From Anthoceros angustus (taxonomy: Eukaryota; Plantae; Anthocerotophyta): 28,191 nucleotides of DNA. A model generated the notes under the pieces. It was given only the letters and a program-made list of their open reading frames with translations, was not told where the DNA came from and ran no database searches. Numbering within the stretch: position 1 is the stretch's first letter; the number at the start of each line of letters is the position of its first letter. A program made the translations under genes and the position numbers. Of the stretch, positions 1 to 26,040 are shown piece by piece. Location: positions 1-28,191 of the forward strand of contig MU008208.1 of the NCBI GenBank assembly GCA_010909165.1, in the 5' to 3' direction.

Positions 1-1080
1 GAGTCAATTTGCTGGATTGCTTCCCACATGTGCCCGAGCACCCGATACTCCTTCGCCATTGGTGCTCCGGAGCCGAGCGTGCGTCCGCTTGTGACCATCC
101 TCCCGCCAGTTCGAGCCGGAGCCGGCCGAGTCTCGTGAGGCCACAAGGCCGCCCACCTCGCAACCGCTGCTGTTCACTGCCCAGCCCCTGGCCGCTCCGC
201 CATTACCATAGCGCAGCCCTTCCGCCTTCCTTAATCGACCAGCTTTTTCGCCCAGCTCTCGCCCCCGCTTATTCTCTCGATTGAATGCTTACATGGTGGA
301 CAATTTACGTAATTTGCAAGAACTAGTCTCCCATGTGATCCTTTTCACTTGGTTGTCTTGTTCACCAGCGGGGAGCACCATCTGTTAGGTTAGTCACCAT
401 CGCCTCCATGTTTTTCAGCGGATGAAGCCTCACAATTACCTAATCCTGACATGGAGATTGCTATCACGAGGCCCTCACCTTAATGTCCTTCGCTCTTCGC
501 TTCTCGGTGTGTATAGGCCCGAGTTTGAGTTCCCTCAACATTTCTCTATACCTCCACACGCCTATCATCTTCCCTTTCCTCCACCCGTGTCTCCACTTGC
601 AGATGAGTTCAAGAAGACGAGCCCTCGCCTCTTCCAAAGCCGAGCCTCCTTGCACTTGCCATCAGCCCTAGCTAAGTCCGACAACTACCGGTGCCGTGGT
701 TGGCCAGACTTTTTCTGGTACTGCAGATTTGCAGGAGCCTTGAGATTTTTCACGATCTGCACCGTGAGTGCCCTTGGCTAGAAAACCCCGCTTTCAAGTT
801 GCACCATGTTTGTGAAGAAATTCAGGTCGCGGCGCCACCAGCGATGTGAAGATCGCAACTTTTGGTAACAGCTGTGTTCGCGCGTGTTTATGCCGTGTTT
901 ATCTGAATCTCGCAATGGCTTTGTTATAAATGTGTATTTTGGTAGACATAGTGCAAGGAAAAGCGGGAGCGTTGTAGGGCTTCATATCGAAACTCAGTTA
1001 AGCTATGTGCCGATCAGTACCCGGATGGGGTGCTGACCAGAACTTATTTTGGTGGACTTTATACTGGTTTTAACTCGAGG
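1..1080 (+). mobile_element. Highly decayed 3' part (RT/RNase H remnant) of an upstream Ty1/copia element
   Basis: SSRRRALASSKAE at 606-644 resembles the copia RNase H motif SSKKQ..VA.SS.EAEY. SAL..ARNPAF-like at ~767-797 (needs a frameshift) resembles CDN.SA..LA.NP.FH. The segment ends in a PPT-like tract followed by TGTTGG. Very degenerate; the start is not defined. Confidence 0.35.
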
Positions 1081-1258
1081 TTAAGTGGGAGTGTTGGATT
1101 AATAACCACGACGGTTAAATATCCCACTTACTTTTAGGTTATGCTATTTAGGGTTATTAGGCTACTTTTGTATATAACATTTTCTGCTCATTATTAAATA
1201 CACATCGTTTTATTTCCATTGCTCTCGCATGCCTCGCATGCCCTTTCTTGCTAGATGC
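1081..1258 (+). repeat. Candidate polypurine tract (1081-1091) plus short LTR (1092-~1258)
   Basis: TTAAGTGGGAG is directly followed by TGTTGG, the usual copia PPT/LTR-start junction. An AT-rich ~165 bp stretch ends near ...TGCA with only a partial PBS-like GGTATC at 1263-1268. No second copy was found in the window. Confidence 0.4.
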
Positions 1259-1275
1259 ATGAGGTATCTCCACAA

Positions 1276-4135
1276 TGTCAACCTCCCACCCCTGTCCAAG
1301 GAGGACAAGTTTGACGCCAAACATAATTTCCCCACTTGGAAATTTGGATCACCAATATCCTTCGCAGAAGCTATGGGGCTACGTTGGTGGGGTTGGCACC
1401 CCTGCCCCATAGCTTGCCACGAGTTGGCACGTAAGGAGAAAGAAGAATGGGAGGACTACAACCAACAAGCCAAAAATGTTCTCATGCAAAGCATGAAGCA
1501 AGGCACCGGCAAAGAAATTGGAGGGGACCATGAAATGACATGGCAACACCGAGAAATCTGACGCCCACGACATCATGCACACCATACACACTATCAAGAG
1601 CTACCTCGCCTCGCATGGCGAGGGCGACCATGTGACCACCACGCAATGGTGTTTCGAGGTCGGACCGTGAAATTCCAGGCCCTCGGATTCAACATCCCCG
1701 AGGAGCTCCTAGCCGCACTGCTATCCACATTACTAATCGGGGTCGTCGCATGAGCTTGTGAATTCAACCCCTCACCAACAAGGTTTTAAGTGCCATGCTT
1801 ACGAGGAAGGCGCCGGAAAGTATTTGCTCAGGGAGCCCTCCTCCAGTGCTTTCTTCACGTGACGAGGGCTAACAGAGGTCGTGGAAGAGGCTCCTTCCGA
1901 GGCACCACGCGCACAATAGAGGACGGGTACATTCCCACCATGGCAGAGGCAATTTCAACCCATCATGGAAGATCCTAAAATACGCCGTAAGGGTTAGGGA
2001 TCTTCTAACAATTAAAATCAGCATTCGCCAATCGCCTTAACCATGCGGCACTCTAAGGCTTTCCTCGCTCACATTGACCACGACCCTCAACTTGCTAGCA
2101 CACCTCGCCTCTGTAGCCTCCTCGCTTATCTCGCCCAAAACATGCTCGTATATTGACCCGAGCCTCCCAACATATGACTCCCCACAGTGGAATACTTCAC
2201 TAAAATCACACCTACAAAGACAAATTAATTTTCACCTTGGTGACAATTCTAAACACCACATACTTGGGCTTGGATCAGTAGACCTCAATGTCCAACCCAA
2301 CTCAACCCTGCAGATTTCAGATGTCCGTCTAGTACCTGGCCTCACCAAAAATCTTTTCTCAGTTCGAAAGGTTGATCAAGCTGGCTGCTACGTCTGCTTT
2401 GGAAACGGCCATTGTGTCATTGAAACACCACAAGGCGACCTGATCGCCACGTGACCTTAAAATGACGACTTATACCATCTCGTGGTTAGCCACCCTCATC
2501 TCTATCCGCAGTACGTAAACACAATCGACGTTCTGTGGCATGCCCGGCCTGCACATGAATCACAGAAAATGAAGGACATGTTAAAACTCCGTCACGGCAC
2601 CCTCTCACACGTAGAGGACTTGGCAGAAGCCTGTTCCCTTGGAAAGAGCCATCGATCACCTTTTCCTAAGGCATCCAACACACGAGCAACCAAGCGCCTT
2701 CACCGGTACATTCGACCTGCGGCCCTTCACCGATCATTGTTCGCTACACCTACTTTATGCTGGTAATCGACTTCACTCGCCAACATCATTTACACACTCA
2801 AGAACAAGGCCCAAGCATTTTCATGCTTCAAGGACTACAAGACCTGGTCCGAAAAACAAAGCAGGCGATACCTTACTTTGCCTCGGATCCGATGGAGGTG
2901 GTGAATATGGCTCCACTCAATTTTCCAACCACGCAAGGCATCAACAGACAGATTACCACCCCACACACCTCTCAGCAGAACGGGGTCGCAGAATGGATGA
3001 ACAGAACTATACAAAACTGCGGACTAGCCATGCTCATCCACGCCCAGTTACCTAAAATCACGGCGAGGCAATGCGACGCAGCTGTTTGCCACATCAGAAC
3101 ACTAACCTTGTCCCTCTCTCAGGGCACCCCATACGAAGCCTGGACAGGCAACAAGCCAGATTTCTCCTCATTATATTCGAGCTCACTGTGTATGCCCACA
3201 TTCCCAAGGCTCTCGTGACAAAACTCGACAATAAGGCCCGAAGTTCTGTTCCTGCTTCGGCTTCACCGGCATCAAAGGCTACAAAATTATACACCCTCAA
3301 ACCCACAAGGTGACTCATTCTCGCGTCACATTTCTTGAGGATATGCACCACGCCTGGGAGCTTCACAACAGACAATGACGACGAGGATGGTTCCGTGATT
3401 TCTCCGTCCTCGGCCGGATCCCACCACAACCACGCCCAGTTCACCTCGCCCAACCCAGACCTCCGCCCACACTCTGCCCACGCACGGCCCCTATTTCGAT
3501 CTGGGACACACCTCAACCAATGTTCGGCGACACAACGCCGACCTTGCCACCCTCACTCACGCCTCCAGCCCCCGGGCGAACGGCCCTGAGAAGGGGGTAG
3601 GCAGTTCAGTATGGGCTTGACGAGGACGACACCCCGACGGCCTCCATCACATCAACAAAGCGCACCAAGGAGGTTCTGCACCCGGCCACCAAAGATGGGG
3701 AGAGCTCACCGTGCGTAACGGCGCTTGAACCGCGTGGCACGGCGCCCACACCCGGCGTGAACATGGACCGCCTCGCGCGCACACACGCACGCCCACAGCT
3801 CGGCTCCGGATCATCCCAAGGATCGCAGGTCGGCCCGCCATCACACACAAGACACCGGACGTCCGGACGGGGAGCAACACCGATTTTCACCACATAATCG
3901 ACTCAACAATTATGGTCCTTATCCCCACTCCAAAAGGCAAGCGAAATATATTTTGATTTTCCTAATCATGATAATCCAGATATCCAACCAATAAACACCC
4001 AAGGCGTCAACGAGACTCCGGATCCGTATCATGAGGGCACACATGAGAACATCCCACAGCATCAACCTGACACCAACCAGCCTAGACGTAGGCACTCTCA
4101 GCGTTCTAACGCAGGTAAGATAAATAGATACACTC
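1276..4135 (+). mobile_element. Ty1/copia retrotransposon, 5' part (gag, protease, integrase, INT-RT linker), frameshifted
   Basis: gag-like KEDKFDAKHNFPTWKF and EEWEDYNQQAKNVL. Protease YID..GASQHMTP (frameshift, ~2148-2185) followed by LGDNSKHHILGLGSV...DVRLVPGLTKNLFSVRK. Pre-integrase LWHAR..H and EACSLGKSHRSPF. Integrase SDGGGEY, TPHTSQQNGVAEWMNRTI, TPYEAWTGNKPD. PR-INT-RT order is diagnostic of copia. Linker ends PRRRHSQRSNAGKINRYT at 4081-4134. Whether 1276-3600 and 3900-4135 are one element is likely but not proven. Confidence 0.9.
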
Positions 4136-4165
4136 AACACCATAAATTTTGAAGGGGGGGAATAT
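4136..4165 (+). repeat. Left TIR of the 9.1-kb element
   Basis: AACACCATAAATTTTGAAGGGGGGGAATAT. The reverse complement of 13223-13250 is AACACCATAAATTATGAAGGGGGAATAT (one substitution; G-run 7 vs 5). Confidence 0.85.
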
Positions 4166-5060
4166 CCTCGATGGGGGTTTTTTGTGAATAACCGCTGAAG
4201 AGGGTTGGTGATGGGTCTAAAAGCTGTGGGTTCAGCTATTATTAGGAAACCATACTGGAAAAAAGGGTCCGGCTCTTGGATCATACGAGTTTTCCGTTGG
4301 TTCATATATCGCCGAAGGTGACCCTCTTCCCTTAACCATTTGTTTCGCCAAAACAAGACCCACTAATGCACACCTGATGCCGGTCAAGCAATAATAGCGA
4401 ATCTGCGAATCAACGCCACTATGGAAGGGTTATGCAATTTCGCGACACGTTCAAACCATCAACATATTTATGGGAAGAAAATTTTGTTTCCGTGTGTAAT
4501 GTGTGATCCTTCGCCTATTTTACAGGTGGTGAGGCGAGGGCCGGCCCTCCCTTGCCTCACCATGTGGAAGGTCACATGGAACATGTTTGCTATCCACTTG
4601 GGCACCGCCTTGTAATGAATTTTGAACAGTGGATGTGGTGCGGCGTGGCATGTTCCACGAGTGGCCGGCGCCCCGCCATTGTCCACAAGGACACATTCCA
4701 CATGTTTGATATCGCATGGTCACCACTTCCTTTGGAATGGCATATGAACCCGAGGGGGGTCATGTTGCATGCCGTGGTGTTGCACACTACCCCCAAACCG
4801 ATCACACGCACCATATTCCACCATCAATACTGACACACCCATCAATAAATATTACCCAATACCATCACGGTATGTGCAATCGATTGCGCTACTTCAATTT
4901 GAGATAAAGTTATGCACTTACGAGAATGAATGGGGCGCCGCGCGCCACCCTTCCATCGCGATTAAGTTGGAAAGGATGGGCGTAATGGACACGTGAAGTG
5001 GGGAGCCACATCCATACAACCCCTAATGAGAATGGTTCAGCCGGTCCCTACGGTCAATAG

Positions 5061-7400
5061 CTATTCGCCCCCGAGTTCACGCCATCGCTGGCCGGCGTCC
5101 CCATTATTGTCATCGCTATCCTCCCACACTTTGACCGGGCGGTTGTATGAATCCGCATCGCTCAATTTGTCCCCGATCGCCTTTTTGTCCACCGCATACA
5201 AATGTTTCCGCATTCAAAATAAAACCGTAATAAAGGATGATCAGTATCATTGACATAGACCTCTGTATGTTTTGGGATAAAATACCTTATTCCCTTTTTC
5301 CCAAAGGTCGCCCATCTTGTTTGGCTTCCTCGTAGTATATATTCCTCTACATACCGCCAGACGATCCCATGATCCGTCCGACCGGGATAAGAAAGTGAGG
5401 TTGTGGTGCATCCAACCTCACGTATTTTCCCAATCCGTAAAGGTCTGTGTATGTCGGTGCATGGCACGAGGAACATTCCTTCTTGATCTCTCGCAATATC
5501 GCCATTCAACGCGCCATTTCACGCCGCTGCCTTCCAATGTTTTGATATGCTCCTGTACATATCTCGTTGGGGAAGCTCCCTCAACAGTGCTTCCTCTAGC
5601 AAAGCTTCATCAGGTACATGAAGGGGTTGCGCTGTCTCTTCCTCTTCAGCACGGGAGAACCATTTCCAAGGACGGTCCAGAACAAGGCCGATGTGGTTTT
5701 CGACAATAATAAAGAATCTCGGCCGTCAACCTGCAATTCTTCCCACCACTTGTACTCTTGTTACATAAGGTCGCAAACCCACTAACCCATCCTTCAAATG
5801 AGCCACACCTTGGGTGTGAGTGCCCCCGCGGTTCCTTTTTATCCTGCACGTAAGGACATCAAATGGCCTCGAAGGAACGAAATTTAAAACTCCAAACGCC
5901 TCCGCTTCCCAAAGCGGTGAAGTTGAATCTTGCTCGATGATCGTGACCACGCGGTCGTTTGTCCTCGCTAATTTTGAACTGCGCCGGTATGATGATTATT
6001 CAACTTCTTCACCGCATACTTGACCTCCCCGTCCCCTGCTCAGACAGACATATGTCCGGAACTGAACCTCCACGAACCTTCACCTGGAGAGGGAGTATAT
6101 GCCTCCGCAATGTCCGCAACAGCGTAGCGCTTCGCTTTGTGTTTAAGGCTTTTGGAAAAGCAGGAAAACATCCGGTCTATTTGATCATGGTGTGACCAAC
6201 CAAGAGGAATCCCACCTTCACTTTTTGAACGTGCCCATATCAACGAGCATGTTCAAATATGCAAACAATAGCTGATTCTTGTTCTCCGACATGTATTGTC
6301 AAGTTGCAAATACAACACTTTGGGCAGCACACCATCATAGTTGTGGATGACATCTTGAATGACGAGATAGTCAAATTGGCATCATTCCGGAGGTTGGCGA
6401 GTGCAAAACGCCGTGGCTTTGTGGGTGTAGTTGTGGATCATGCACCGACCACGTGAACGGAAATGCGGCATTCCTCCTAGGTTTTTGGCCACCTCAACAT
6501 GTGCGGTAGCTCTTTCTTCCGTCCATGCCATCGATACAAGCATATACTTATGTGGTTCAACATAACTCTTGCTCCGTGTTTTGTCATCTTCGTGACGCAC
6601 TAGCCGCATGTGGGCGCCCAATCTTTGATATTTCTCCGCATAACATATGCACACCGTAGTGTGAGTCCTTTAAAGTTGTCAACTTACAAGACAAAAACAT
6701 AGTATGATGTCCAAAGAATCATCGCCAGCATCACTCTCCGACATGTGGCAATGTATGTCATGGACACCGCCAACTTGACCTTCCTCCACCCTCCACCCTA
6801 CGACGGACCTTAAATGATATAATGGGCGAACACATTTGTCGCATTTCCAAGCCCGGAAGGTCCATAAGGCATACTTGTAGGGCGCGCCCACCGGCGCCTG
6901 GCCCCGACCTCATTCCCAAGGTCGAGATGGTATAAGTTTTCATGCCGGGCCCAAGCAATGTCATAGGCACATGCTTGGGTTACCCGAGCGACCGGCGCCG
7001 CATGACCAGGGGAACCCTCCTTAGATAAGGTAGATGGTGGGCGCCGTCGGCGCCCACCGGGACATGTCCACACATACATACTACATATACATCGCCATTG
7101 AGGGTTTGGCCCACATGGTCAACAACCCTCAGATCTGGAAAGCAAGGGATAAGGAAACAATGTAACTTACCTTGATCAACCTTTGAGATTGTATTTCGTA
7201 TAGTTGTTTTCAATCCAGCAAGCGAGCAAGTAGAGAATCATAGACTTTGGAATCTTTACCTGTTGAAGTGCCCTTTCCATAGCTTCAAGAACTGTGCGAG
7301 GTCACGCATCACGACCTCTTTGTTCACAATGCCGCCTATATTCACTCCAAATTTCTAGTTTTGTGTATGTGTCGTAAGTTGAAGACCTCGATATTTGGAA
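5061..7400 (-). pseudogene. Sola/DUF7869-like DDD transposase, frameshifted (5' end uncertain, may extend to ~8170)
   Basis: Minus-strand motifs in the expected order: HHLPY (~7020), IDGMD (6521-6535), VLPKVLYLQLDNTC/NKNQLLFAYLNMLVDMG (DN at 6295-6300), KVKVGFLLVGHT.DQIDRMFSCFS (~6160-6225). The C-terminus RKHLYAVDKKAIGDKL...RWRELGGE* ends with the stop at 5061-5063. The superfamily label comes from recalled motifs, not a search. Confidence 0.85.
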
Positions 7401-8499
7401 GTCTCTCACCATGTTGAGGAAAGCATTGTCCATCCAGGCTATTGCACTTAATGCATGGTGAGATCGCTTTTGGATTCGGCCTCATAGCATCCCACTGCAT
7501 TCAGATGACTCTACTCTTCAACTCTTCATACGGGCCGAGGCAATACACTCTTCCGGCGCAAGCAAGATCAAAAGGATCCGCCCGAAGATGAGTCACAACT
7601 TTGACGCTGATCCCGCCGCACAACCCGTATCGTGGATTCCAAAATGTTTCGCCTCGCCTCCCCATCCGTAAATAGCGATATCGTTGTTCACGAAACCTTT
7701 CTTTTGTCAACTGCGGAGACACATCCGATTGCAACATGCCTTCCGAAATCAATGTTGATACGACTTCACATTTCCTCATTGAGACCCCCCGCCTCTTCCG
7801 CACCGGACACTCGTAGTCTCGCACACCAAAGTCTCACTCACCTGGTTTGGGGTGATAAGATGGCGGATGTCGCTCCGGACTGCTCGAAATCGTCGCCTCA
7901 TTCGATTGCCGCAGCTTCGCCGTCTGGTGCGGTGCGGACGACTCCACCGCAACAACCGCCTCCACGCATTCGAGCCCACCTTGGGAGGGCCTTTTCTAGC
8001 TAGCCGCTTGCTCACACCGTTGTTTGCATGGAGATCCTTCGAGCGGCATACCGTTAAGATTTCTTGGTGTCCGCGGCAGCACCTCGGAATGGTAGGGGAG
8101 GCCGAGAGCGGGCCACCCGCCACGGCAACTGGTGTGCAAAGACTTGACTTAGTAGAGGATAAAATTCACAAAGTCAACCTCCATTAGAATCCGGTGATGA
8201 AACAAACCTTCGTGACCCGTAGTGGCGAGGAGAACTGGAGATGTCTTGCGACCTCATGGACGCCTGGGGCATTCACCGCTTCTCCTCGTCCGTTGCTTTT
8301 GGAAGATGTCTTTCATATTGGGATTGACCTCACCATCCGCAAAGTCGCACAATCAAACAGGGAATGAGGACATGTTTGCGCAACGCATCCACGACGACGA
8401 CATTCGATCGAAAGCAAGGCTTACATCGCCTCGGAGTGAGTGGCGCAAGCATTTTGTTGGGCGCCTTCCGAGGTAGGACGAAGTGGAGGAATGAAAGAA

Positions 8500-8830
8500 G
8501 GCAAGGTTCATTCTAACAAGATACCGAAATGTCTAAGCCTTCCGGAGGCCGTTTGGATAACAATACCACCAACCATATAAAACCATTGTTGAAGAAAACG
8601 CCGTTAAGTTACTAATGCTTGGAGGGAAGTAACGGAAAGTCATTATGGTTTGTAATTAAACAAACCCACACGCAATGGGAAAAGCGGTAGTTAACTGTAG
8701 GTACAACATGGCGGCGTTAATAATGTGCCACCGGGTTCGAACCATCTAGTTGGAGCAACCAGAAACCCTAACTTAAAGTAATTATTCACGGAGAGGTGAA
8801 CGAGTTACGGCGTTTAAAAAGCAAGTTTAA
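8500..8830. promoter_or_regulatory. Candidate bidirectional promoter between the divergent transposase and methyltransferase genes
   Basis: AT-richer non-coding gap between coding-like segments of opposite orientation, with a telo-box AAACCCTAA at 8763-8771. Promoter function is inferred from position only. Confidence 0.3.
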
Positions 8831-8914
8831 CGCATACAAAACCGTGGAGCGCAACCGCCCCTCAAAGCGGCGAGCCCGGGCTTTGCGCGACGTGAGCGGG
8901 TCCGACTTCGAGAG

Positions 8915-11460
8915 GTGAGAGTGCGAGCGCCATCTCTAACCCTTGATTGCAGCGAAGGAGAAATTGGGCAAGACCGGATCGCAGCTGCTCGTGGTTTTCT
9001 CACTTTCCGTGTTTGCACCGATTGTGAATCCATTGACGCGTTGGAATTGGTCATTGACAGAGAAGGAAGGCCCATCCGAATTGGCCTATGTCAAATTGAA
9101 GGTGATGGCGATGGGCGACGAAGAAGGATCGGCGAATCCGGATCCCGAGCCTGCAGAGTCAAGAAAACGAGAGTGAGGAAAAGACAGAGAAGGCCGGATG
9201 ATTTGCATGGAAGACCTGTCTTTGGGAGGACATGCTGTGGGCCGGTGCGGCAGCTTCCGCAGCGGGGCCACTCAAGTCCGAAGCGGGCTCAAAGGCTTCC
9301 ACAACAAATCGGAGGCCATGGAGAGAAGGTGGAGAAGGGTGGGAAGAGGGTGGCTCCTATTCCTTCGCCATACGCCGAGGAGAGACATTCGACGCCTGGA
9401 GCTCGATGGATGCAGAAGGTCTTGGACAAGGATTGGATGGTTGTTCAGGATCCGCAACCAAGACGAGAGCATGTTTTGACGCCGTATACAAGCCGTGGAT
9501 TATGGGTTACAAGGATGCACCAATCAACGGCAAGGGGGTGGTGGGCAACATTGGACATGTCCAATGGGGATCTCAGAGTACGCTTCTCGCATTACAAGGC
9601 CCCAAGAATTTGATGCGGTGCTGTGGTCCCGAGCTAGAGCTCGAGATCGTTCAACAATCTTGTGATCAAGAAGTGCGAACCCGCCGCTTTTGGAGCTTTT
9701 CGGAATGTAGGCGAGCAAATTCGCAACTCGATTATTTATGCTTTCCAATGTTTTGCTTCACCGCTTTGTCTCTAACATGAGCATTGTTCATTGCGCAGGC
9801 TGTGATGGGGAATGTTTCATCGTGACTTGTGCGGAAATCACACAACTGCTCAAAGACAGAGGGTCATGGCGCGGCAAGAGCCGAGGTGCGTGACGAGGAG
9901 GAAGAGAAGGACAGACAACGAGGAGGGCACAATTTGGCCCCGAGGATGAAGACTATGGGCCAATGCCGATATCCGGGACTGGATGAAGAAAATTCGGACG
10001 CAACAGACGACAGGATGCGGGGTTTTCATGCCTTATGAAACACCCCGCTGCGATCACCGAGGGTTGAGGGGGCCGGCCGGCGCCTGAGCCGCCAGGCGTC
10101 GAGGCGGTGCTTGACGCGCAGTCTGGAAGCCGGAGAGGAACCTGGCGCGCCGGCCGGCGCCTCACACAGGAGGCCTCAGGCACCACCGCATGAGGCGGAG
10201 GAGAGGGGCGCGCCGGCCGCGCCCGCTATGACTAACAGGGCGAGAGAGGAGGAAGGGCCTAAGGGAAAAGGAAGGGATCTGAAGAAGATCGAGGCAGGGA
10301 AGGACAGAGAGGACCATCCTAAAAAAAGCAAAGAGGAAAGGCAACAACCGCAGAGGGTGGAAAATGGGTGACATTCCATGTGACAACAGATCAGAGAGGA
10401 TTGCGGAAGCTATCCGGATGAAGACCCTTGACACGGGAGAAGATATGCGAAGGTAGTAAACAAGGTTGGTGAAATTGGAGAACCTTCGCCGCATCGCACG
10501 ACGCCGATGCATGACACGGAGGGTGGATGAAGCATGGGCCAATTATTTGGCGCGTGTTATATCGAAAGGGAGGATTGAAGAGGGCGTTTTGCCTTTATTA
10601 TGTATGATTGATCTGCGGAGTGTGATGACATGGAAAAACTAGAGCGTAGATTCAGGCCAAAAATATGTCATGGGAGTCCTAGGAGGAAACCACACTTATG
10701 CGCAATGAAGCATCTTGACATCTCCGCAAAAGCGGTTTATGTGGAGGCTCATGTACTGTGGTCTCAATGTACAGAGATGCGAGTCCTCGCCATGCACTAT
10801 AATACGGCGTGTCGACAAGCGGAAGATGAATTTTATAGAGGTGAGGTATTTGCGTGATGAATTGATTATTGCGAAACGGATGGTGCGTGATGACCATGAC
10901 ATGGAAATTCAACTTGTATAAGGTGTTGGGGCTTATTGAGGATGATGAAGCACGCGAAGATGATGTTTATAAATGTAACAAGGTTGACAACAGACACATT
11001 TTATGCATCGCGAAACAAGAGGGTAGGGTATGGGAAAATGTAGACAAGATATTTACCAAGTGGGAAGCGTGGAGTTGCCAGAGAAGAAGCATGTGATAGC
11101 GGACAAGCAAGAAGAGCAAGGTGAAGTGAAAGTGACCGACGAGGCTAACAAAATAGAAATCTATGTGAAGCCAAAAGATATGCTTGCAAAGCCTTGGAAA
11201 TCATTTCAAGGGATTCCGGGGAGTGTGGGCAGAGATACTTATCACGCAGAGAAAGTGGGTGTCTCATTGACCGAAAGGAATGGATGAATATATCGCTCGG
11301 AAGAAATTCCATATTATTCAAGTGGCGATGGCTAAACACTTGGTTTTCTTTTGAAGAGGTTCGGCAGAGTATCCCCAAAGACTCAATCGATGAAATGTCG
11401 CGATTCCAAACGGCATTTGGAAAGGTAAGCCATTTTCCGGACCTTCTTTCCATTTTAATT
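8915..11460 (+). pseudogene. Unassigned coding-like remnant(s) upstream of the methyltransferase domain (one long gene or two genes)
   Basis: A run of overlapping plus-strand ORF fragments (8915-9613, 10111-10371 E/K/R-rich, 10715-11287, 11194-11670) lies inside the TIRs in the same orientation as the MTase. No confident domain was recognised. Confidence 0.35.
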
Positions 11461-11690
11461 CAGGGGCGCCACCGCGCCCGCATGTCCGGATCGCCGGCCG
11501 CGCCCATCTTCATCAGGGGGGCCGCCGCGCCTCGCGGTCGCCGACACGGGGGCGCCGCCGGCGCCCTCCACCGGTCACCGCGGGCAGGGGCGCCGCGCGC
11601 CGCGCCCAACGGAGGGCGCGGCCGGCCTCCACTAATGGAGGGGGCGGCCACGCGGGTTATCGGATTGTGAGCGGGCGCGCCCGCCCTCCA
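11461..11690. repeat. GC-rich degenerate minisatellite
   Basis: GGGGCGCC at 11463, 11549 and 11587 plus a variant at ~11516, each followed by CCGCGCC-like runs. Composition is far more GC-rich than the flanks. Confidence 0.6.
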
Positions 11691-11899
11691 CCGCTATTGT
11701 GTGAGGTGCTTGAGCGCCGCATTCTAACAGTTGTTTGGGCAAAGAATCAAGGACGTGGAGGTCTTGACAAAGCACGACTCATTCATTTCATTTTCGAGAT
11801 CAATAATTGGAAGGGCTTAGAGAATGAGCAGGGCTTTGGCGGATAGGACTTGCAAGAAGGACTCCATATTCAATGTTCCGTCGAAGCGTGTCCAAGATT

Positions 11900-12807
11900 G
11901 TGGAAGCCCGCAACGCTCGACATGCGTGGGTTTTGAGGGAAGGAAATACACCCTTCTCATGGATGTTCCCGTGGATTTGACATCGGGCCAATGGACAAAC
12001 GAATGGATTTATCCATGATGGGGTGTGTTCCAAAGTTTCGTGAGAAAACGGAAAATGACGACTTCCGAATTATCGCCATGCATGGTGTTGAAGAAGCCCA
12101 TACGGTAAGGGAGGCTATGAAGTGGTGTGCCAAAGGCGGCTTGGTGTCATTCATTTGGGATAAGACTAACATGAACAACGATGAGGAGGATTTGAGACGT
12201 GGAATACGTTATGCTTGGATGGGGTGTGAAAGATGGATGTTCAAGGACAGGGCTGCCATGATGCCAAATGTGATGCACGGACCTTCAACAATGGAAGATC
12301 GTTATTGGACACCCTCACCGCCAAGAAAGTTTTACCTCTCATGACAAGTTGGTAGTGTGCCCATACCAGACCATTGGGTCTTATGATGAAACTCGTGAGG
12401 ACATTCTCCAAGGAGGGAGACGGGTTATTGATGCATGCTCAGCGGTGGACTACGACACTAGCGTTGCCGTGGCCGAATCAGACATTGCAATAGAGGCGGA
12501 CTTGAGATGCGCAGGTTACATTGCCCAGCGCATACACGGCGTTGATGTCTTGCCCGATGCAGACGAGGAGCTGACTTTTGAGCCGCACCGAAGGGGACCA
12601 TCTCAGTTCTGGGCAAAAGAGGTATGTATTAGCGAGAAAGACTGCTTGAAAGCCCAAGTCGTCGCATTGAGTGCGAAGAGGTTGAAGACGACAACCGGCG
12701 AACTTATGGAGGATGGACAGACTTTGATGTCAGATGGCGTGCGACCCGACCATCGATTTACACCCAAAATGACATCAATGAAGACCAGGAGGCTTTGGTG
12801 CGAATGA
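11900..12807 (+). pseudogene. Beta-class N4-cytosine/N6-adenine DNA methyltransferase (N6_N4_Mtase-like), frameshifted, with C-terminal extension
   Basis: Manual reconstruction across ~4-5 short deletions gives YTLLMDVP(x)G (motif IV-like, DVP at 11962-11970; compare DPPY/DLPYG), SFIWDK (12150-12164; compare IIWxK), CPYQ(x)PLGLMMKLVRTFSKEGD (from 12358; compare HPTQKP..L...I...S..GD), VIDACS(G.)GTTTLA (12424-; motif I, compare VLDPF.GSGTT..A) and IAIEADLRCAGYIAQRI (12484-; compare IGIELD..Y......RL). Catalytic motif before the SAM-binding motif is the beta-class order. Confidence 0.8.
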
Positions 12808-13222
12808 TAGCTTTGACGCACGAGATGGAGCATGAATTTGGCACTTGTAGAAGATTCGGCCCGGTGGATGCAATGGTGGACTCTCAAACAATCCTCGCGA
12901 TAGAACATCAGAGACGCTGATTAGCAAAATCGCCTATGCACTTAGCGGTGTTGGTGTTTAGTTTTGCGGTTTTCTACGAGAACCGCATGTTCGGATGTTT
13001 TCGACCCTCTTAAAATTAACAATGGGTCTTTTCTCAAATTTTGTTGTTAATCGTTTTTGTAGTAGTAGCGGCCACGCCATGTGGTTTCGGGGGATGCCAT
13101 TTTCGTTTGGTTTTCCGCTAGGATATGCATATAACGGTGTCTCAGATTCAAACAAGCCGTTTTCCGCAATTTGTGGATGGTGTCTTTTCCACAAGGGGTT
13201 ATTTTTCCTTGAAGGGGTTTGT

Positions 13223-13250
13223 ATATTCCCCCTTCATAATTTATGGTGTT
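13223..13250 (-). repeat. Right TIR of the 9.1-kb element
   Basis: ATATTCCCCCTTCATAATTTATGGTGTT, the inverted match to 4136-4165, followed by the TSD-like TCTC. Confidence 0.85.
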
Positions 13251-13254
13251 TCTC

Positions 13255-14860
13255 CTTCTAACTGGCAGATCCTAAGAGCAATATAGCATATTGTCTTACG
13301 ACTATAGATCGTCCTCGCCAACTACCAGAGGCCATCACCGCCCACAAAAGCACAATCGGAAGCAAGCAATCGTCGTAACTAGAATCCTAGAAGCTAACAA
13401 GACTTGGACTTAACTTCCCTACCTAAGGATAGAAAACTAGTAGGCTCTAAATGGACATTTAAGATCAAATTAAATCTTGAAGTATAGAAAGGTATAAGGC
13501 AAGACTTGTAGCTAAGGGATATTCACAAAAATATGGTTTTGACTAAACGAAACCTTTAGTCCTACTCAAAATAACCTCACTAAGGATCCTCTTAGCCTTA
13601 GCATCTCACCATGACTATGAGCTAATGCAACTTGATATCAAGACGGCTATATATGGAGATCTCGACCACACTATTTACATGGAGATTCCTCAAGGGATAC
13701 ATGTGGATAGGAGAAAATACAATGCCCGCTATTACTCAAGTCCTTATATGGACTCAAGCAAAGCGCCATGAAATGGTATTATAAGTTAGATGTTAGCCTT
13801 AAGGAACTAGGGTTCACCAAGCTAAACTCGATAGCAACATCTATATCAAAAGATCTCAATTCATTGTTTTAGGAGTATATGTACATATAGTTCTTATGTC
13901 TAACACTAAGGCAATATTAGAAAATACCGATCTATGCTAGCTAAGCGCTTTCTATGACCACTTGTAGAGAACTTTCCTTTTGTTTAGGCATTCGTGTTCT
14001 AAGGGATAGAAATGCTAGAAGTATTCTTATTCATCAATCCAAATACATTCAAGAGATCTTAACCAAGTTTAACATGTTAGATGCTAAACCTATCTCTACG
14101 CCTATGGAAATGAACCTCAAACTTAGCAGAACCGGACCAACGGATAACACCTCCGATGCTACTCTCCTCCTTACTCTTCAGCCGTGAGGTAGTCTTATGT
14201 ATCTTATGGTATGCACTAGACCAATCTCTCCTATCGATTGGGAGCTTTATCTCAATTTTATCACTCCTACTCAAGCTCATTGGGCAGTCAAGAGGGTATT
14301 TCGATACCTAAGGGCAACCTTGGACTTAGGGTTACCCAATCGTATCAAGCAAGAAGAGCCTCTACAACTAGAAGGTTTTAGCGATGCCGGCCGGGCGGCA
14401 ATATTGATGATAGAAAGAGTACAAGTAGTTATGTATACTTACTTGGAGGACGGCAACAAGCTGGAGTAGTAGCGGCGACAGTTGTCGCTCACTGACGGAA
14501 TATATTGCTCACTAACTCACGCATGTAAGGACGGACTTTGGCAACTCCTCCAACTCTCAGAGTTAGGTGAAACACAAAGGATCCCTAGGCCACTTTATTG
14601 TGACAATCAAAGTGCTATCGCCCTTACCTACAACCCGAAGTTCCATGCACGAACAAAGCACGTGGAAGTGCAATTCCACTTTATAAGGCAAGTGGTCGAC
14701 GAAGGTAAATTTATAGTTTTATATTGCCCAACGGAACAAATGACGACGTGCTACGAAGGCACTCAACTCGTCAAGCATCAAGAACACATGAGAAATATGG
14801 GACTAAGAAAAGTCTCGAAATCGCCTATAGTACTTAGCATAGTTTTATATATAGCCTAAG
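13255..14860 (+). mobile_element. Ty1/copia retrotransposon, 3' part (reverse transcriptase and RNase H), frameshifted
   Basis: AYCLTTID.P....EAI; LEANKTW; LPKDRKLVGSKWTFKIK; RYKARLVAKGYSQKYG; CLGIRVLRDR...IHQSKYIQEIL.KFNM; YLMVCTRP; HWAVKRVFRYL; FSDA; DDRKSTS; LYCDNQSAIALTYNPKFHARTKHVEVQFHFIRQVV. Confidence 0.93.
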
Positions 14861-16997: not shown

Positions 16998-19900
16998 GTG
17001 TTCCGAGATATGGAGCGGAGGATATGGTTGCCGGCGATGGCGACCTTTTTATCCCGATGCGATGCGGGCGAGAGGATCGAGGAGCTCGTGCGACGTTTAA
17101 CCGGATGTCCGGTGCTCGCCGACGCGCGCCGCGGCGAGGCGGCCGTGTGCCACCGAGGCGGCACATCCATCCGGACTTCTTGGATCACCGATGGCGGCGC
17201 ATCGCGAATGTACCTGTTGGCGCATTTGGGCGTCCGGATAACACCGGACGCCACGGCGACAAGGTCGCCCTCCGGGATCTTTGTGGGCGGGTCCGAGAAT
17301 ACTATCGAGAATGTGCTACACCGGCGGGAACAGGGCAAGACTACGATGTGGAGAGTGTTGCGAGTCTCGGACTTTGGTGAGAAGATCCACATTGTTGATT
17401 TTGGGCTTGGCTTGGAAACAATATCGCCGGTGATGGCGGAGTTGCAAATCTTGGGAGTCGTCCAAGAGCTAATGTGGTCCGTGGTCCCGGATCTTTGTTT
17501 GGTGATTGTGATGCCATCCGGTTGGAGTTGCACGAGATGATGCCTCGCGCATCCGGCCAAAGGTGAGGATCTGCGTGCAACAGCTGCAGCGTTGCCAAGC
17601 GTAGTACCTCCGGCGAGCTAGAATGGATTTGGTCTTAGAGAAGCATTGTTCGAGGCCAAGTTGTGCGCCGATTTAAAGCGGCATTGTTGTGACAAAAATG
17701 TTTAGAGCGTGTTGGCCATTCAAATTGAAGGTGATTCGTAGCATTCTTCCGCATGACAAAAGGAGGCGAGGAACAGCATTTGCAAGACCATCGGATCGAT
17801 CGAAGGCGAGGAGTTGTTGCCCATAGTATGGATAAACCGGATTCCACATGGGAAGAAAGCAGTGTGTGTGAGGGCTTTCATCGGGTTTTACGCATTGGGT
17901 CACTAAGATACAAGAATGCGCAAACCGGGGTAGTGAAAAATGTTAGATGGACCGTGCTACGGTCTAAAGCGCCAACGCCATATGGATTACGCTCATGTGG
18001 ATGGGCGTTTTCTTCAAAGGTCGGAAAGACGCGAATCGGGAAGTCTTCAACTTGCAGACCTAAAGAGGAGATCTTCATTGAGTATGCGTGCAGGATCGGT
18101 GTGCTCCCACGTTTATTCTGACTACTTTTGCAAGCTTTGGATGAAGTATTTCCGGTTTAAAATACCACGGTGCAACCGGTTTTCAGTCTGTGCAGACTGC
18201 GATGACCTAAAGAGGAAAATAAAAGACGCAGGGTCGGACCACGTACAAGGTGAGATGGCGGTCCTTATTCCGGCGGTCACCGGATGTCCGAACTTTGGCG
18301 CAACCCCATGGCCTCATACCCTTTTCTTGCGAATGAAGGCGGGGCTTGAAACAAACCGTGTGCATTCTTCGCCCTTATTGTTGCGTGTGCGAGACAAGAA
18401 TGTGGGACTCGACTCCGAGAACAACAAGGGCGCGAAAATGGCGCACCGGCACAAGTGCTTGGCGGCTAAGTTCATTGGTATTGCCATAGATGGTATGGAC
18501 CAAAAAAGCGAGTTGCCCCATTACAGATTGCCAAAGACGGTTGATTCGAGCCCTTGTCGGGCTTCACGTTCTAGGTGTCTGGTGTTCAACTACTTGTGCG
18601 CAGTGTATTTGAGTTTCCGAATGTGAGAAATGATCCGAATGGGCTGGCCGTGATTGACATGTTATCAATACGGGAGGCCGCTCCCCTATTCTATACTTGC
18701 GGATGGACAACACTGCTCAAAACAAGAATCGAGGAGAATTGGCATATCATCCATGCTTGTGGCGAAAGGTATCTTCAAAAAAATCAAGGTGGGGTTTCTT
18801 CTTGTTGGCCATACCCACGATCGATTGACCAAATGTTTTCGAGGTTCTCGGTTGTGCTAGGGTTGAAGGATGCTTTCACGAAATGATAGGGTTCTTTGGA
18901 GGCGTACACCCCATCACCATGATTCACATCTTGAAGGAGGTGCGGACTTCAAGACCTATCTATGGCCGAAGGGGATCGTGCAGCATGACTTGCATAATCA
19001 CATTTTCAACACCGGTTCAAAATAACAAAGGGCTATCGAGAGGGCGTGGCGTGCTAAGATGCAAGGAGTTTTCAAGTTCGATCCGTCACCGGTGGTGTGC
19101 GCTATTACGTTCGGGGTGCCACCACGGGTGATTGTGGCGCTCCATTGTTGCCGTTGGTCCCATCACATGCCCAAGGTAAAGGAAAGGGACATGCAAAGCG
19201 GAAGGATGCCGATGTCCGTGTCAATGACGATAGTCTCCAAGCGATGGCGGTAGTGGTAGTGTAGTGGCGGAGTCCATGAAGTAAAAGCGGGCCTAGAACG
19301 CACCCGACATATGAATGTGGAGCAACTATCATGGTGGGATACGTTGGGATGAGCAGTGCAATAGCCGAGAGACTAGCGGTGGCATTCCATTCCGTTGGAG
19401 CAGAATGGTCTTGGTACACTCGCGATGAAGAAAAGCGAGGTACCACAAGACCCTCCAGACTCAACTTTGGTTGATCCTGCAATGGCCAGACGGATTTTTG
19501 GACATGGTCGGGAGGTGTACACCGGGGCACATCGAAGTGCAGAGGGGAGGGCAAGGGCAGAGGCTCATGTCAGAGGTTGTGTGAAGGAGATTGAGGAGGG
19601 AATGATGGTTGCTGTCCAAGCTGGGGATGATCCAGGGCAGACCATTCTGGCTCGCAAAAGTGGTGGAGGTGGACCATGATGTTGTGGTCCCTTTCATGAT
19701 AGTTCATTGGTGGCGGACAGAGAACAATGATGCATTCGAGGGAAGGTACATGGAGGAGTTTGTGATGAGCGCCCACGGTCGAGGGAAAAAGTGCGGCGAT
19801 CAAAGAATGGAGGCGGGCGTCGGAGAAGCATTTGCAAAGCCTCAACTTCCGAGACAAATGTGCTGGCCTATGATTTGTGACAAGGAACAAGACGTTGCGA

Positions 19901-23218: not shown

Positions 23219-23538
23219 TGTTATAGCTTGTGCGTTGCGTTGCGGCTGCTCTTCACTCTCCATTATGCCTTGCGCGACTCCCTCTTATGGCTTATTCATT
23301 CTGCCCACTCTTCACTTTCTGTTATGCCTTGTGCAACTCCCCATTATGGCTGCTTTGTGAGCACTCTTTTCTCTCCACTCCCTGTTATGGCTTGTGCGTT
23401 GTGATCACTCTTCACTCTCTGTTATACCTTCTGCGCCGAGGCCACTCTCTACTCGCATCAGTCATAGCTTATGCGTTGCGGCCACTCTCCACTCTTAGTT
23501 ATAGGCTCTATGTTGTGGCGACTCTTCATTTGTGGTAA
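23219..23538 (+). repeat. Degenerate tandem repeat, about 9 units of ~23-40 bp
   Basis: Approximate consensus TGTTATGGCTTGTGCGTTGCGGCCACTCTTCACTCTC. Fuller units start at 23219, 23382, 23419, 23460 and 23497. The overlapping ORFs at 22953-23538 simply read through this repeat. Confidence 0.75.
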
Positions 23539-24399
23539 AAACACGATATCTTTCGAAGGGGGTGAATATTCACGAAGGGGGTTTTCTGAAATATATCTTC
23601 TGAAGGGGGTTTGACATGGGTCTTGAACCGTGGTTTTGAGGTATGAATGAATGTAAGGCGAGAAAAGAAGGTGGAAATTCACGTGAACCCGATACAAGGT
23701 CCATTTCATGCCGGTGAAGGGTTATGGTGCAAGAGGTAACCCTATTTGGGGTGCATTTAAGACCCATGACAAGGGCCATTCTTTGCCGATCCTGGTCTTT
23801 CTCGCAACAACCCTAAAGATTCGTAAAAAGCACGGTGATCAAAATTGGATGAGAGGCGAACCGATGGCGGGGAGCAAAGCATGTCGAGGAGTAGGCGCGG
23901 GCGCGCCCTTTCTCGTGCGATGATGCCTTCGGCGAGTAGCAGCCCATAGCGGATGTGTGTACAAAAGACTTTGGGTGTGGGGTGGGTGGCCGCACCCTCA
24001 ATTGTGCCCAAATATAATCACATGGTTCATCCCACAGTGCAATCGATGAATGAAGAAAAGTGTGGGGCAACAGCGGTTCCCGCCAACATATCGCAGAAAA
24101 ACATGCCAGCTCATCGTGTGTTTGTTAGTATGCCGCAATGCCGAGCGCAACTACCACCACACTCCCCACATGTCCTTCCGCATGTAATGGAAAAAGGCTT
24201 GAACATTGGAAGTTATTAAGCATGGGAAGTCTACACACAGAGAAAGCCACAACCAAATTCCTATCATGGGCCTAGACTCTTTTCGAAATATGTCTGCGCT
24301 TGGAAATGTGCACTCCAAACTACGAATTGAGCTTCGCATAACCTCACCAATTGCCCGTTGAAGATGACCTAACATTCGAGGGTTTCCTACTCTTCGCGG

Positions 24400-24600
24400 A
24401 CTCACGCCATCATCTTCGTTGGGCACGATCATGACCATCATCTTCACTATCCTCGGTGGCACTTTGACTTTGTTGAATAAAGCCTCGCAATTCAATTAAG
24501 TTATTCTTGATTGCCTTCTTATCCACAGTACAAATGTTTCCGCGTCAAGTTGAACTCATAATAGAGGATGACCGTTTGGTGAACAAAACCTCTACTTACA
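24400..24600 (-). pseudogene. Remnant of the transposase 3' end in the 2.2-kb element
   Basis: Homologous to ~5070-5260: exact TACAAATGTTTCCGC at 24529-24543 and 5197-5211, with collinear TCACGCCATC, CTATCCTC..CACTTTGAC and GATYGCCTT blocks. Confidence 0.7.
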
Positions 24601-24767
24601 CATCTATTTCTGACGATCTCAAAGTAATGCTATGCTTCACGTTTTGGCGGGTACTGAACATGCCCATATATTCTTGAGAACAAGCTGCACATAGATGCAT
24701 GAATGAATGAATGAAAATAGGTCCATAGGTGTTTTTGAAAATGTGTGCAACCATGGCATGAGAGGAG

Positions 24768-24886
24768 CCTTAACAAGCCTTGTACATGGGCGCCGGCCCC
24801 CCTTAACAAGCCTTGTACATGGCGCCGGCCGCGCCCAGCCCAAGCCTTGTACATGGGCCCGCCCTCAACCTTGTACATGGGCTGCC
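24768..24886. repeat. Minisatellite, four copies of CCTTGTACATGG with GC-rich spacers
   Basis: Core at 24778, 24811, 24845 and 24869. The first two units share CCTTAACAAGCCTTGTACATGG. Confidence 0.85.
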
Positions 24887-25012
24887 ATTGATAAAATAAA
24901 TAATTAGTGCTTCTAATGTGTTCAACCTAGGATAGTTACTCAAGTGGTTTGGAAACAATATGTGCATGAATAGGTCATGGGTTCGAGTCTGTAGAGGCAT
25001 GAAAAACTTCTT

Positions 25013-25345
25013 GTTGATTTTATGGGCGCATGGGCACGGCCATTTAAGGCTAGCATGCCCTCTATTGAGGTGACTTGAGGTGTGCGGATATATTCCACAA
25101 CGGATCCATGGGTATGAGGTTTTGCGGATCTTGTGAAGAATTGACATTAGAGGCCCACGCAGAGGGCTTGCGCAATTTGGGCAAAGGAGGTGTGTATCAA
25201 GAAGGACTCTTTGAAAGCGCAGTGGTTTCTTTGAATGCTCGTCGGTGAAGACCAAAGCGGGAGGGTGAGCGAAGACTCAAGGGCTTTGGGCGAGATAGCT
25301 TTGATGAGCAGGGGAGCGGATTGAAATTTGGTCATCGTGATGGAT
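25013..25345 (+). pseudogene. Remnant of the methyltransferase C-terminal half in the 2.2-kb element
   Basis: VDFM.G.GT-like motif I at ~25013-25040, then IE.DLRC.GYIPQRIHGYEVL and WAKEVCI..KD.LKAQ, collinear with 12484-12660. GGCTTTGGGCGAGATAGCTTTGA at ~25280 matches GGCTTTGGTGCGAATGATAGCTTTGA at ~12791. Confidence 0.75.
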
Positions 25346-25702
25346 TGAGTCCGCTCTAGCACCGATGAGTCCAAGTTAGTCATAGAGAGTAGGTTCACGG
25401 TTTTGTAGGCACCTAGATGTGCTTCTTCTACGTGTTCGTAATAACTTTTGGACCCGTTGTGAGGCAATTGATGATCTCATTTTCCCTCTTCCTCAAAAAC
25501 AAAGCGAAGGCGCCCGGCCGGCGCCTTCCCTGATTTGTCTTTGTGTGTTGGAAAGCGGGTTTTCATGATAACTACTCGTTGGAAAGCAGTCGACCTTTCT
25601 TGAAAGCGAGGCAAAGCATATTTGGATGTGGAATGTGCTAAGAGGGTTTCCATGTCACAGAAGGGGGTTCGGATATTCACCCCCTTCGAAAGATATCGTG
25701 TT

Positions 25703-26040
25703 TAAAGATGCCATGCGGTATTTGACTCTTCGAAGACTTTGTGTTATAACACGATGGGTTTTTTAGCAGATATATGTTGTGGCCACTCTCTAACTTCTTT
25801 GTGTTGTAACAAGTTGGGTGTTTTAGCAGACTACGTTGTGGCCACACTCTGAAGACTTTGTCTTGTAACATGTTGGGTGTTTTAGTGGATCTATGTTGTG
25901 GCCACGCCCTACTCTCAGTTATGGCCTCTATGTTGTAGCCAATCTTAATTTGTGGTAATGAATCCATGTTGTATCGTATTGACCATGTGTTGTGAAGACT
26001 TTGCGTTGTAACAAGTTGGGTGTCTTTTAGCGGATCTATC
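25703..26040 (+). repeat. Tandem repeat of ~59-bp units, continuing the array interrupted by the 2.2-kb element
   Basis: GAAGACTTTGTGTTGTAACAAGTTGGGTGTTTTAGC.GA..TATGTTGTGGCCAC-like units at ~25732, 25791, 25851 and a partial unit at ~25996. It shares TATGTTGTGGCCACTCT with the 23219-23538 array. Confidence 0.8.

Follow-up and report, generated by a model that had tools for sequence, protein, structure and literature searches.

Transposons that carry a DNA-modifying enzyme of their own form a recently recognised class, described so far in brown, red and green algae, and the locus analysed here raises the question whether a member of this class is found in Anthoceros angustus. The window, i.e., the whole stretch of DNA under analysis (28,191 nucleotides of contig MU008208.1), had been described from its letters as holding a prokaryote-type DNA amino-methyltransferase inside a Sola/DUF7869 transposon. 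If methyltransferase-carrying transposons occurred beyond the algae as well, their range of hosts would be broader, and there would be a possible route for prokaryote-type amino-methyltransferases into plant genomes. We therefore ask what the element is, how much of the methyltransferase can be recognised in it, and whether the gene belongs to the transposon family. The features on which the answers depend are collected in Table 1.

A probable cut-and-paste element inside a copia retrotransposon

Element A spans positions 4136-13250 (9,115 bp); its inverted ends measure 23 nt, copies of a 4-bp duplication flank it, and the DNA to its left and right is that of one decayed copia element. This copia host occupies positions 1-4135 and 13251 to about 15000 of the window, where Pol_BBD was located at 2074-2451 and sequence of the RT type at 13600-14860; the insertion of element A splits the integrase-RT linker of this host. 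Inverted ends together with 4-bp duplications are present in both this element and a smaller one, element B (ACTC/TCTC in element A, TAAA/TAAA in element B), and Sola elements reportedly make target-site duplications of this length. By analogy, the published Sola-1 element with a like cargo (see the last section) suggests that element A may be a Sola-1 element.

The transposase of element A is a pseudogene, in whose region no open reading frame of 70 aa or more matched Pfam on its own. An 82-aa read-through, with X at the breaks, matched PF25273 over profile positions 55-122 of 192 (E = 1.7e-26, 93.5 bits, cut-off 26 bits). Since the transposase core lies on the minus strand and the methyltransferase reading on the plus strand (11953-12804), the two genes are divergent, and both of them are broken. 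The preliminary description had placed the methyltransferase between the inverted ends and divergent from a DUF7869 transposase, an arrangement that is borne out by these positions. No publication on DUF7869 was found in our literature search.

A second DUF7869 transposase pseudogene was detected at 17940-18920 on the plus strand, and its DNA is unrelated to that of element A. PF25273 is matched by three collinear pieces of it, each in a different frame (best E = 1.4e-8, 35 bits), which are preceded by IAIDGMDQK, a candidate for the first-aspartate motif. AACAC-type ends, GC-rich dyads and remnants of a methyltransferase were all absent from the neighbourhood of this pseudogene.

Table 1. Positions of the features of element A and element B in the window (strand: +, forward; -, reverse;., not stranded)
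Feature	Position	Strand	Evidence or remark
Left 4-bp target-site duplication copy, ACTC	4132-4135	.	3/4 agreement with right copy
Left terminal inverted repeat, starts AACACCATAAAT, ends GAAGGGGG	4136-4158	+	23 nt, 96% complementary to 13228-13250
Transposase pseudogene region	4500-7850 (inferred extent)	-	Frameshifts and stops; negative GC skew on + strand
DUF7869 (DDE-type) transposase core	6097-6339	-	Four pieces, three frames
Single GC-rich dyads	4932, 6881, 7040	.	GGCGCCGTCGGCGCC at 7040 among the best examples, with GCGCCGGCCGGCGC
Cluster of three GC-rich dyads	10069-10223	.	Perfect palindrome GCGCCGGCCGGCGC at 10147-10160
Cluster of at least four GC-rich dyads	11463-11601	.	About 350 nt upstream of first methyltransferase-like motif
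LLMDVPVDLTSGQW, motif IV-like	11953-11994	+	Aligned to ilcDLPYGttqnkW of phage methyltransferase profile
117-codon open stretch between motifs, contains REAMKWCAKGGLVSFIWDK	11991-12341	+	TGA stop 12342-12344
FIWDK	12150-12164	+	Three-frame translation
C-terminal methyltransferase core: CPYQ/PLGLMMKLVRTFSKEGD helix, VIDACS..., IAIEAD...YIAQRIHG	12358-12540	+	Profile and tblastn matches
CPYQ	12358-12369	+	Three-frame translation
PLGLMMKLVRTFSKEGD	12371-12421	+	Three-frame translation
VIDACS, motif I region	12424-12441	+	Three-frame translation
TTTLA	12449-12463	+	Three-frame translation
VAVAESDIAIEADLRCAGYIAQRIHG	12463-12540	+	Three-frame translation
C-terminal gene tail	12541-12804	+	Stop 12805-12807; first part common to element B
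Right terminal inverted repeat	13228-13250	-	Pairs with 4136-4158
Right 4-bp target-site duplication copy, TCTC	13251-13254	.	Flank alignment
Element B, 2.2-kb non-autonomous relative	23540-25702	+	Inverted-repeat search
Methyltransferase tail remnant in element B, DLRCA.YI.QRIHG ... EELT.E.H ... FWAKEVCI	25072-25238	+	68% DNA identity to 12499-12674

Reading frames of the gene opposite to the transposase

Three-frame translation of positions 11700-13000 recovered every amino acid string that had been quoted for the methyltransferase, in alternating frames of the plus strand between 11,953 and 12,540. The frame of the reading is lost four times or more, and there is one stop: the frame changes near 11995-12020, at the stop (TGA, 12342-12344), and near 12367-12371 and 12421-12424. 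From 12463 onward the stretch is open without interruption up to the stop at 12805-12807.

At two places the in-frame letters depart from the motifs of the beta class. The SAM-binding motif I has the form FxGxG, with TT after it, but in frame the copy has DACSAVDYDTS and no glycine loop; to read GxGTT, two more frameshifts that compensate each other must be assumed over some 25 nt, and the GTT-like TTTLA is present in another frame only. The catalytic motif, for which the preliminary description had given the form (D/N/S)-x-P-(Y/F/W), is D-V-P-V at 11962-11973, without an aromatic residue, and the canonical (D/N/S)-P-P-(Y/F/W) is likewise not matched in the element A copy. Among beta-class enzymes, D at the first position of this motif is more usual for adenine methylases.

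Homology searches with the C-terminal third

The C-terminal pieces, with frames picked by eye, were joined into a 74-aa query with X at the frame breaks. No Pfam family was matched by the separate reading-frame pieces. The read-through matched PF01555 (N6_N4_Mtase) over profile positions 163-201 of 221 with an E-value of 0.0031, so the family named in the preliminary description was recovered, but the 17.9 bits stay below the gathering cut-off of 26.7 bits, as is expected of a fragmentary pseudogene. In the PDB, all four matches of the read-through were SAM-dependent methyltransferases, and two of them were beta-class DNA methyltransferases aligned at the C-terminal motif I. Searching 2.3 Gb of phage genomes with tblastn gave matches in 277 records (best E = 8e-7), and the annotated records among the matches listed were DNA methyltransferases from the top to the bottom of the ranking. 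The same was true of plasmids, where 29 of the 30 records matched by tblastn were annotated as DNA methyltransferase and one had no annotation.

Because the frames of the 74-aa query had been chosen by eye, a frame-agnostic test was added, in which 120 PF01555 proteins, relatives of the best phage match, were made into a profile that was aligned to the DNA by frameshift-tolerant dynamic programming. The best alignment scored 27.1 bits (path 12368-12535, profile positions 180-238, one frameshift at 12422), while 300 dinucleotide shuffles scored 14.3 ± 1.45 bits with a maximum of 19.0, none of the 300 reaching the observed score, which lies about 8.8 SD above them. The second-best place in the 28-kb window, with both strands considered, scored 19.8 bits. 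The motif I region aligned to profile positions 200-216, at the C-terminal end of the profile. Taken together, the profile alignment and the phage, plasmid and PDB matches show that the C-terminal third genuinely derives from a DNA amino-methyltransferase of the beta class. For this third, the prokaryote- or phage-type, PF01555-like assignment in the preliminary description has withstood both tblastn and the frameshift-aware alignment.

A motif I-like string, LDGCSGSATKTRACFDA, was also seen on the plus strand of element A at 9433-9481, upstream of the remnant of the methyltransferase gene, with a score of 19.8 bits against the methyltransferase profile. It was rejected as a significant match, for 3 of 500 shuffles reach 19.8 bits and the score fails after correction for about 50 window chunks. 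This string could be due to chance or be the trace of a further SAM-binding module.

The remainder of the gene

Upstream of the C-terminal third, the best local match of the DNA to the profile was LLMDVPVDLTSGQW, at motif IV, whose score was equalled by 30 of 200 shuffles; with relaxed costs for gaps and frameshifts, 6-11 of 200 shuffles still reached the score of the motif IV-like stretch. The distance from this stretch to the C-terminal match, 138 codons, fits the 154 of the profile; the stretch is collinear with the match but not significant alone. For the 117-aa middle piece, no homologue was found among 1.84 billion representative proteins (phmmer), in the PDB or in the ESM Atlas; an SdrD-like bacterial protein returned by phmmer was driven by repeats and was discarded as spurious. 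The middle piece and the motif IV piece as one read-through obtained no match in Pfam or in phage genomes. The gene tail had no homologue among 5.8 billion proteins, and an exact look-up of the 152-aa open reading frame returned no record.

As no search gave a significant match for the N-terminal half, the methyltransferase identity of this catalytic half is plausible by position only. Of the motif order proposed for the whole gene, the C-terminal portion is above chance, while the DVPV/FIWDK half is not significant alone and GxGTT depends on the two additional shifts.

ParBc and related Pfam families had no match in the plus-strand pieces tested between 7632 and 11667 (open reading frames from about 58 aa upwards) or in one candidate read-through, and an Atlas search found no ParB-like domain. 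None of the best phage and plasmid matches inspected has a ParB fusion, and all of these are stand-alone genes of about 250 aa. Decay may hide a ParB-like domain in the element A copy.

A deletion derivative and further copies

Element B has perfect inverted ends of 30 nt (31 nt with the flanking A), which start with AACAC as in element A and end with GAAGGGGG, and it is flanked by perfect TAAA duplications (23536-23539 and 25703-25706). It is only about 70% identical to element A, and matches it at the left end (77%), in one internal piece, and in the tail remnant (25072-25238 versus 12499-12674, 68%). The last of these shared stretches comprises the end of the methyltransferase domain and the tail, and its distance to the right end is similar in the two elements; the motif I region is not retained in element B according to the profile alignment of the window. 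The similar position of the gene tail argues that the gene is integral to the right arm of the family and not a later insertion. Judged by this, the methyltransferase gene is an old, integral part of the right arm.

Subterminal repeats of GAAGGGGG were observed in element B at 23555-23609 and 25660-25687, three on the left and two on the right if the copy in each inverted end is counted. The same string is found in the inverted ends of element A, and these repeats are candidate transposase-binding sites.

Contigs from a public DNA run were used to look at other genomic copies. Summed word depth was 174 over 12076-12274 and 58 over 12275-12473, and ranged from 0 to 24 in the rest of 7300-13254, with 0 over 11877-12075, including the site of motif IV. 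Relative to the element A copy, the contigs have small indels at 12118, 12246, 12248, 12278, 12300, 12330, 12336, 12367 and 12420, of which those at 12367 and 12420 coincide with or adjoin the two points where the C-terminal core shifts frame. The high depth and the differing indels indicate that the methyltransferase core is a high-copy repeat whose copies have been decaying independently. No contig of one RNA run was found on the stretch.

GC-rich dyads

GC-rich dyads with half-sites of the GGCGCC type occur ten times in element A and four times in element B, where dinucleotide shuffles give expectations of 0.11 and 0.02, respectively, and they are absent from the other 16.9 kb of the window. 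Because the pattern was defined from element A, only its presence in element B and its absence outside the elements are independent tests.

For element A the ratio of observed to expected CpG is 0.96, compared with 0.80 for element B and 0.84 outside. With a ratio of 0.96, the old element A is not CpG-depleted despite its GC-rich dyads.

Discussion

Our analysis makes it very likely that positions 4136-13250 are an old, dead DUF7869 cut-and-paste transposon, and that, in its family, the strand not used by the transposase holds a second gene, whose 3' part encodes a beta-class (PF01555, N6A/N4C) DNA methyltransferase domain of phage or bacterial type. In element A both genes are pseudogenes and yield no product at present. 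At the level of the family, the accessory protein may have bound the GC-rich GGCGCC dyads of its own element and methylated the element DNA; this is suggested by analogy, since the same has been proposed for the ParB-methyltransferase cargo genes of algae. The original catalytic activity, the target base and the binding of dyads are thus properties that we infer. The preliminary description had supposed that the transposon may write a mark of its own, which the element A copy cannot do, given the frameshifts and the stop in the gene, DVPV without an aromatic residue, and a broken transposase.

The lack of catalytic residues could be older than the death of element A. If, in the still active element, the methyltransferase-like domain of the family had no catalytic function, it would have been a pseudo-enzyme for binding of DNA or SAM and would never have written 4mC or 6mA. 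Motif IV with DVPV and no aromatic residue, and the in-frame motif I DACSAVDYDTS with no glycines, are both consistent with such a protein, and a related genomic copy in the contigs keeps the same frame arrangement at motif I. However, single residues say little in a copy as heavily decayed as that of element A, motif IV is not securely aligned, and the zero contig depth at 11877-12075 means that no other copy was compared at motif IV. We regard an ancestral pseudo-enzyme as unlikely, though still deserving of attention.

The opposite and most far-reaching version of the self-marking reading is that intact members encode an active amino-methyltransferase, guided to the GGCGCC dyads of the element itself, which would write 6mA or 4mC for self-marking or for escape from 5mC silencing, and which would be a source of domesticated host enzymes like DN4MT1. 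We assign a low probability to this combination.

It is improbable, too, that the element picked up the methyltransferase piece as a gene fragment without function for it, through Pack-type capture or a nested foreign insertion. Such an origin would fit a gene of which the C-terminal third alone is recognisable and in which no ParB-like part was detected, and it would fit the second DUF7869 remnant (about 18.65-18.9 kb), which has no methyltransferase nearby. Against it, the gene tail is found at the corresponding place in element B although this is only about 70% identical to element A, no part of the element is as highly repeated in the DNA run as the methyltransferase core, and the same arrangement is present in the Sola-1 family of Ectocarpus. 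Chance resemblance without any methyltransferase homology, which might be argued from the separate pieces without a Pfam match, a fragment below the Pfam cut-off and a typed query with frames chosen by eye, is hardly credible, because the frame-agnostic score is about 8.8 SD above shuffles and unique in 28 kb on both strands, and tblastn reached an E-value of 8e-7 with listed annotated phage matches that were all methyltransferases down the ranking.

For the transposon with a methyltransferase gene in its right arm, which is our preferred reading, the element A copy alone adds little, being dead and with an unreadable catalytic half. What the locus contributes is an insertion with clean borders and 4-bp duplications, a deletion derivative that places the gene in the right arm, and dyads which within the window are exclusive to the two elements.

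Comparison with known systems

The best matches of the C-terminal piece are orphan beta-class DNA methyltransferases of phages and plasmids (about 250 aa, PF01555), with 39-43% identity over 60-69 residues; examples are those of Xanthomonas phage PhiXhv-28, Ralstonia phage RS-CA1 and Klebsiella phage IME346. The match is located at the C-terminal end of these proteins, as the motif order of the beta class predicts. The phage and plasmid enzymes are intact and stand-alone, with DLPYG as motif IV and GSGTT as motif I, whereas the element A copy has DVPVD and no in-frame glycine loop, and about 90 codons at the end of its gene form a tail that is absent from them.

Prokaryote-type amino-methyltransferases in eukaryotic nuclear genomes are also represented by MpDN4MT1a/b of Marchantia and N4CMT of rotifers. 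Unlike the transposon-borne pseudogene with DVPV in element A, these are intact and expressed host genes with the catalytic motif TSPPY. Our literature search, which was a noisy one, found no description of methyltransferase cargo in a transposon of a land plant.

Among mobile elements, the giant Plavaka transposons of the red alga Bostrychia carry an N6-adenine methylase and a ParB-like protein as the cargo genes PAG2 and PAG3, and arrays of inverted repeats adjoining the ParB gene have been proposed as its own binding sites (bioRxiv 10.1101/2025.02.11.637652). The GC-rich dyads found here are likewise confined to the elements. The Bostrychia elements differ in that they belong to the Plavaka / CACTA-like superfamily and in their fusions of the methylase with SET and of ParB with a 2OG oxygenase. 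Adenine methyltransferases fused to ParB have been described in chlorophytes as well (Iyer et al., PMC4738411).

The closest counterpart is Sola1-1_Ec32 of Ectocarpus, a 21.5-kb element whose accessory gene and transposase are encoded on opposite strands; the accessory protein of 1104 aa has a ParB-like and a prokaryote-type methyltransferase domain and is predicted to produce N4-methylcytosine or N6-methyladenine (Genome Biol 2025, PMC12477816). Going by the published description, it resembles element A in being a cut-and-paste element with a methyltransferase gene opposite to the transposase. Sola1-1_Ec32 differs in its size of 21.5 kb, its brown algal host and its ParB-like domain, while element A has 9.1 kb, both genes broken and no ParB-like domain detected. 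The preliminary description knew of no Sola-type element with such a cargo, but the same gene arrangement had been published for the Ectocarpus Sola-1 element in 2025 (PMC12477816). The pairing of methyltransferase and transposon is real but already on record for an alga, and element A is a further, dead example of it.
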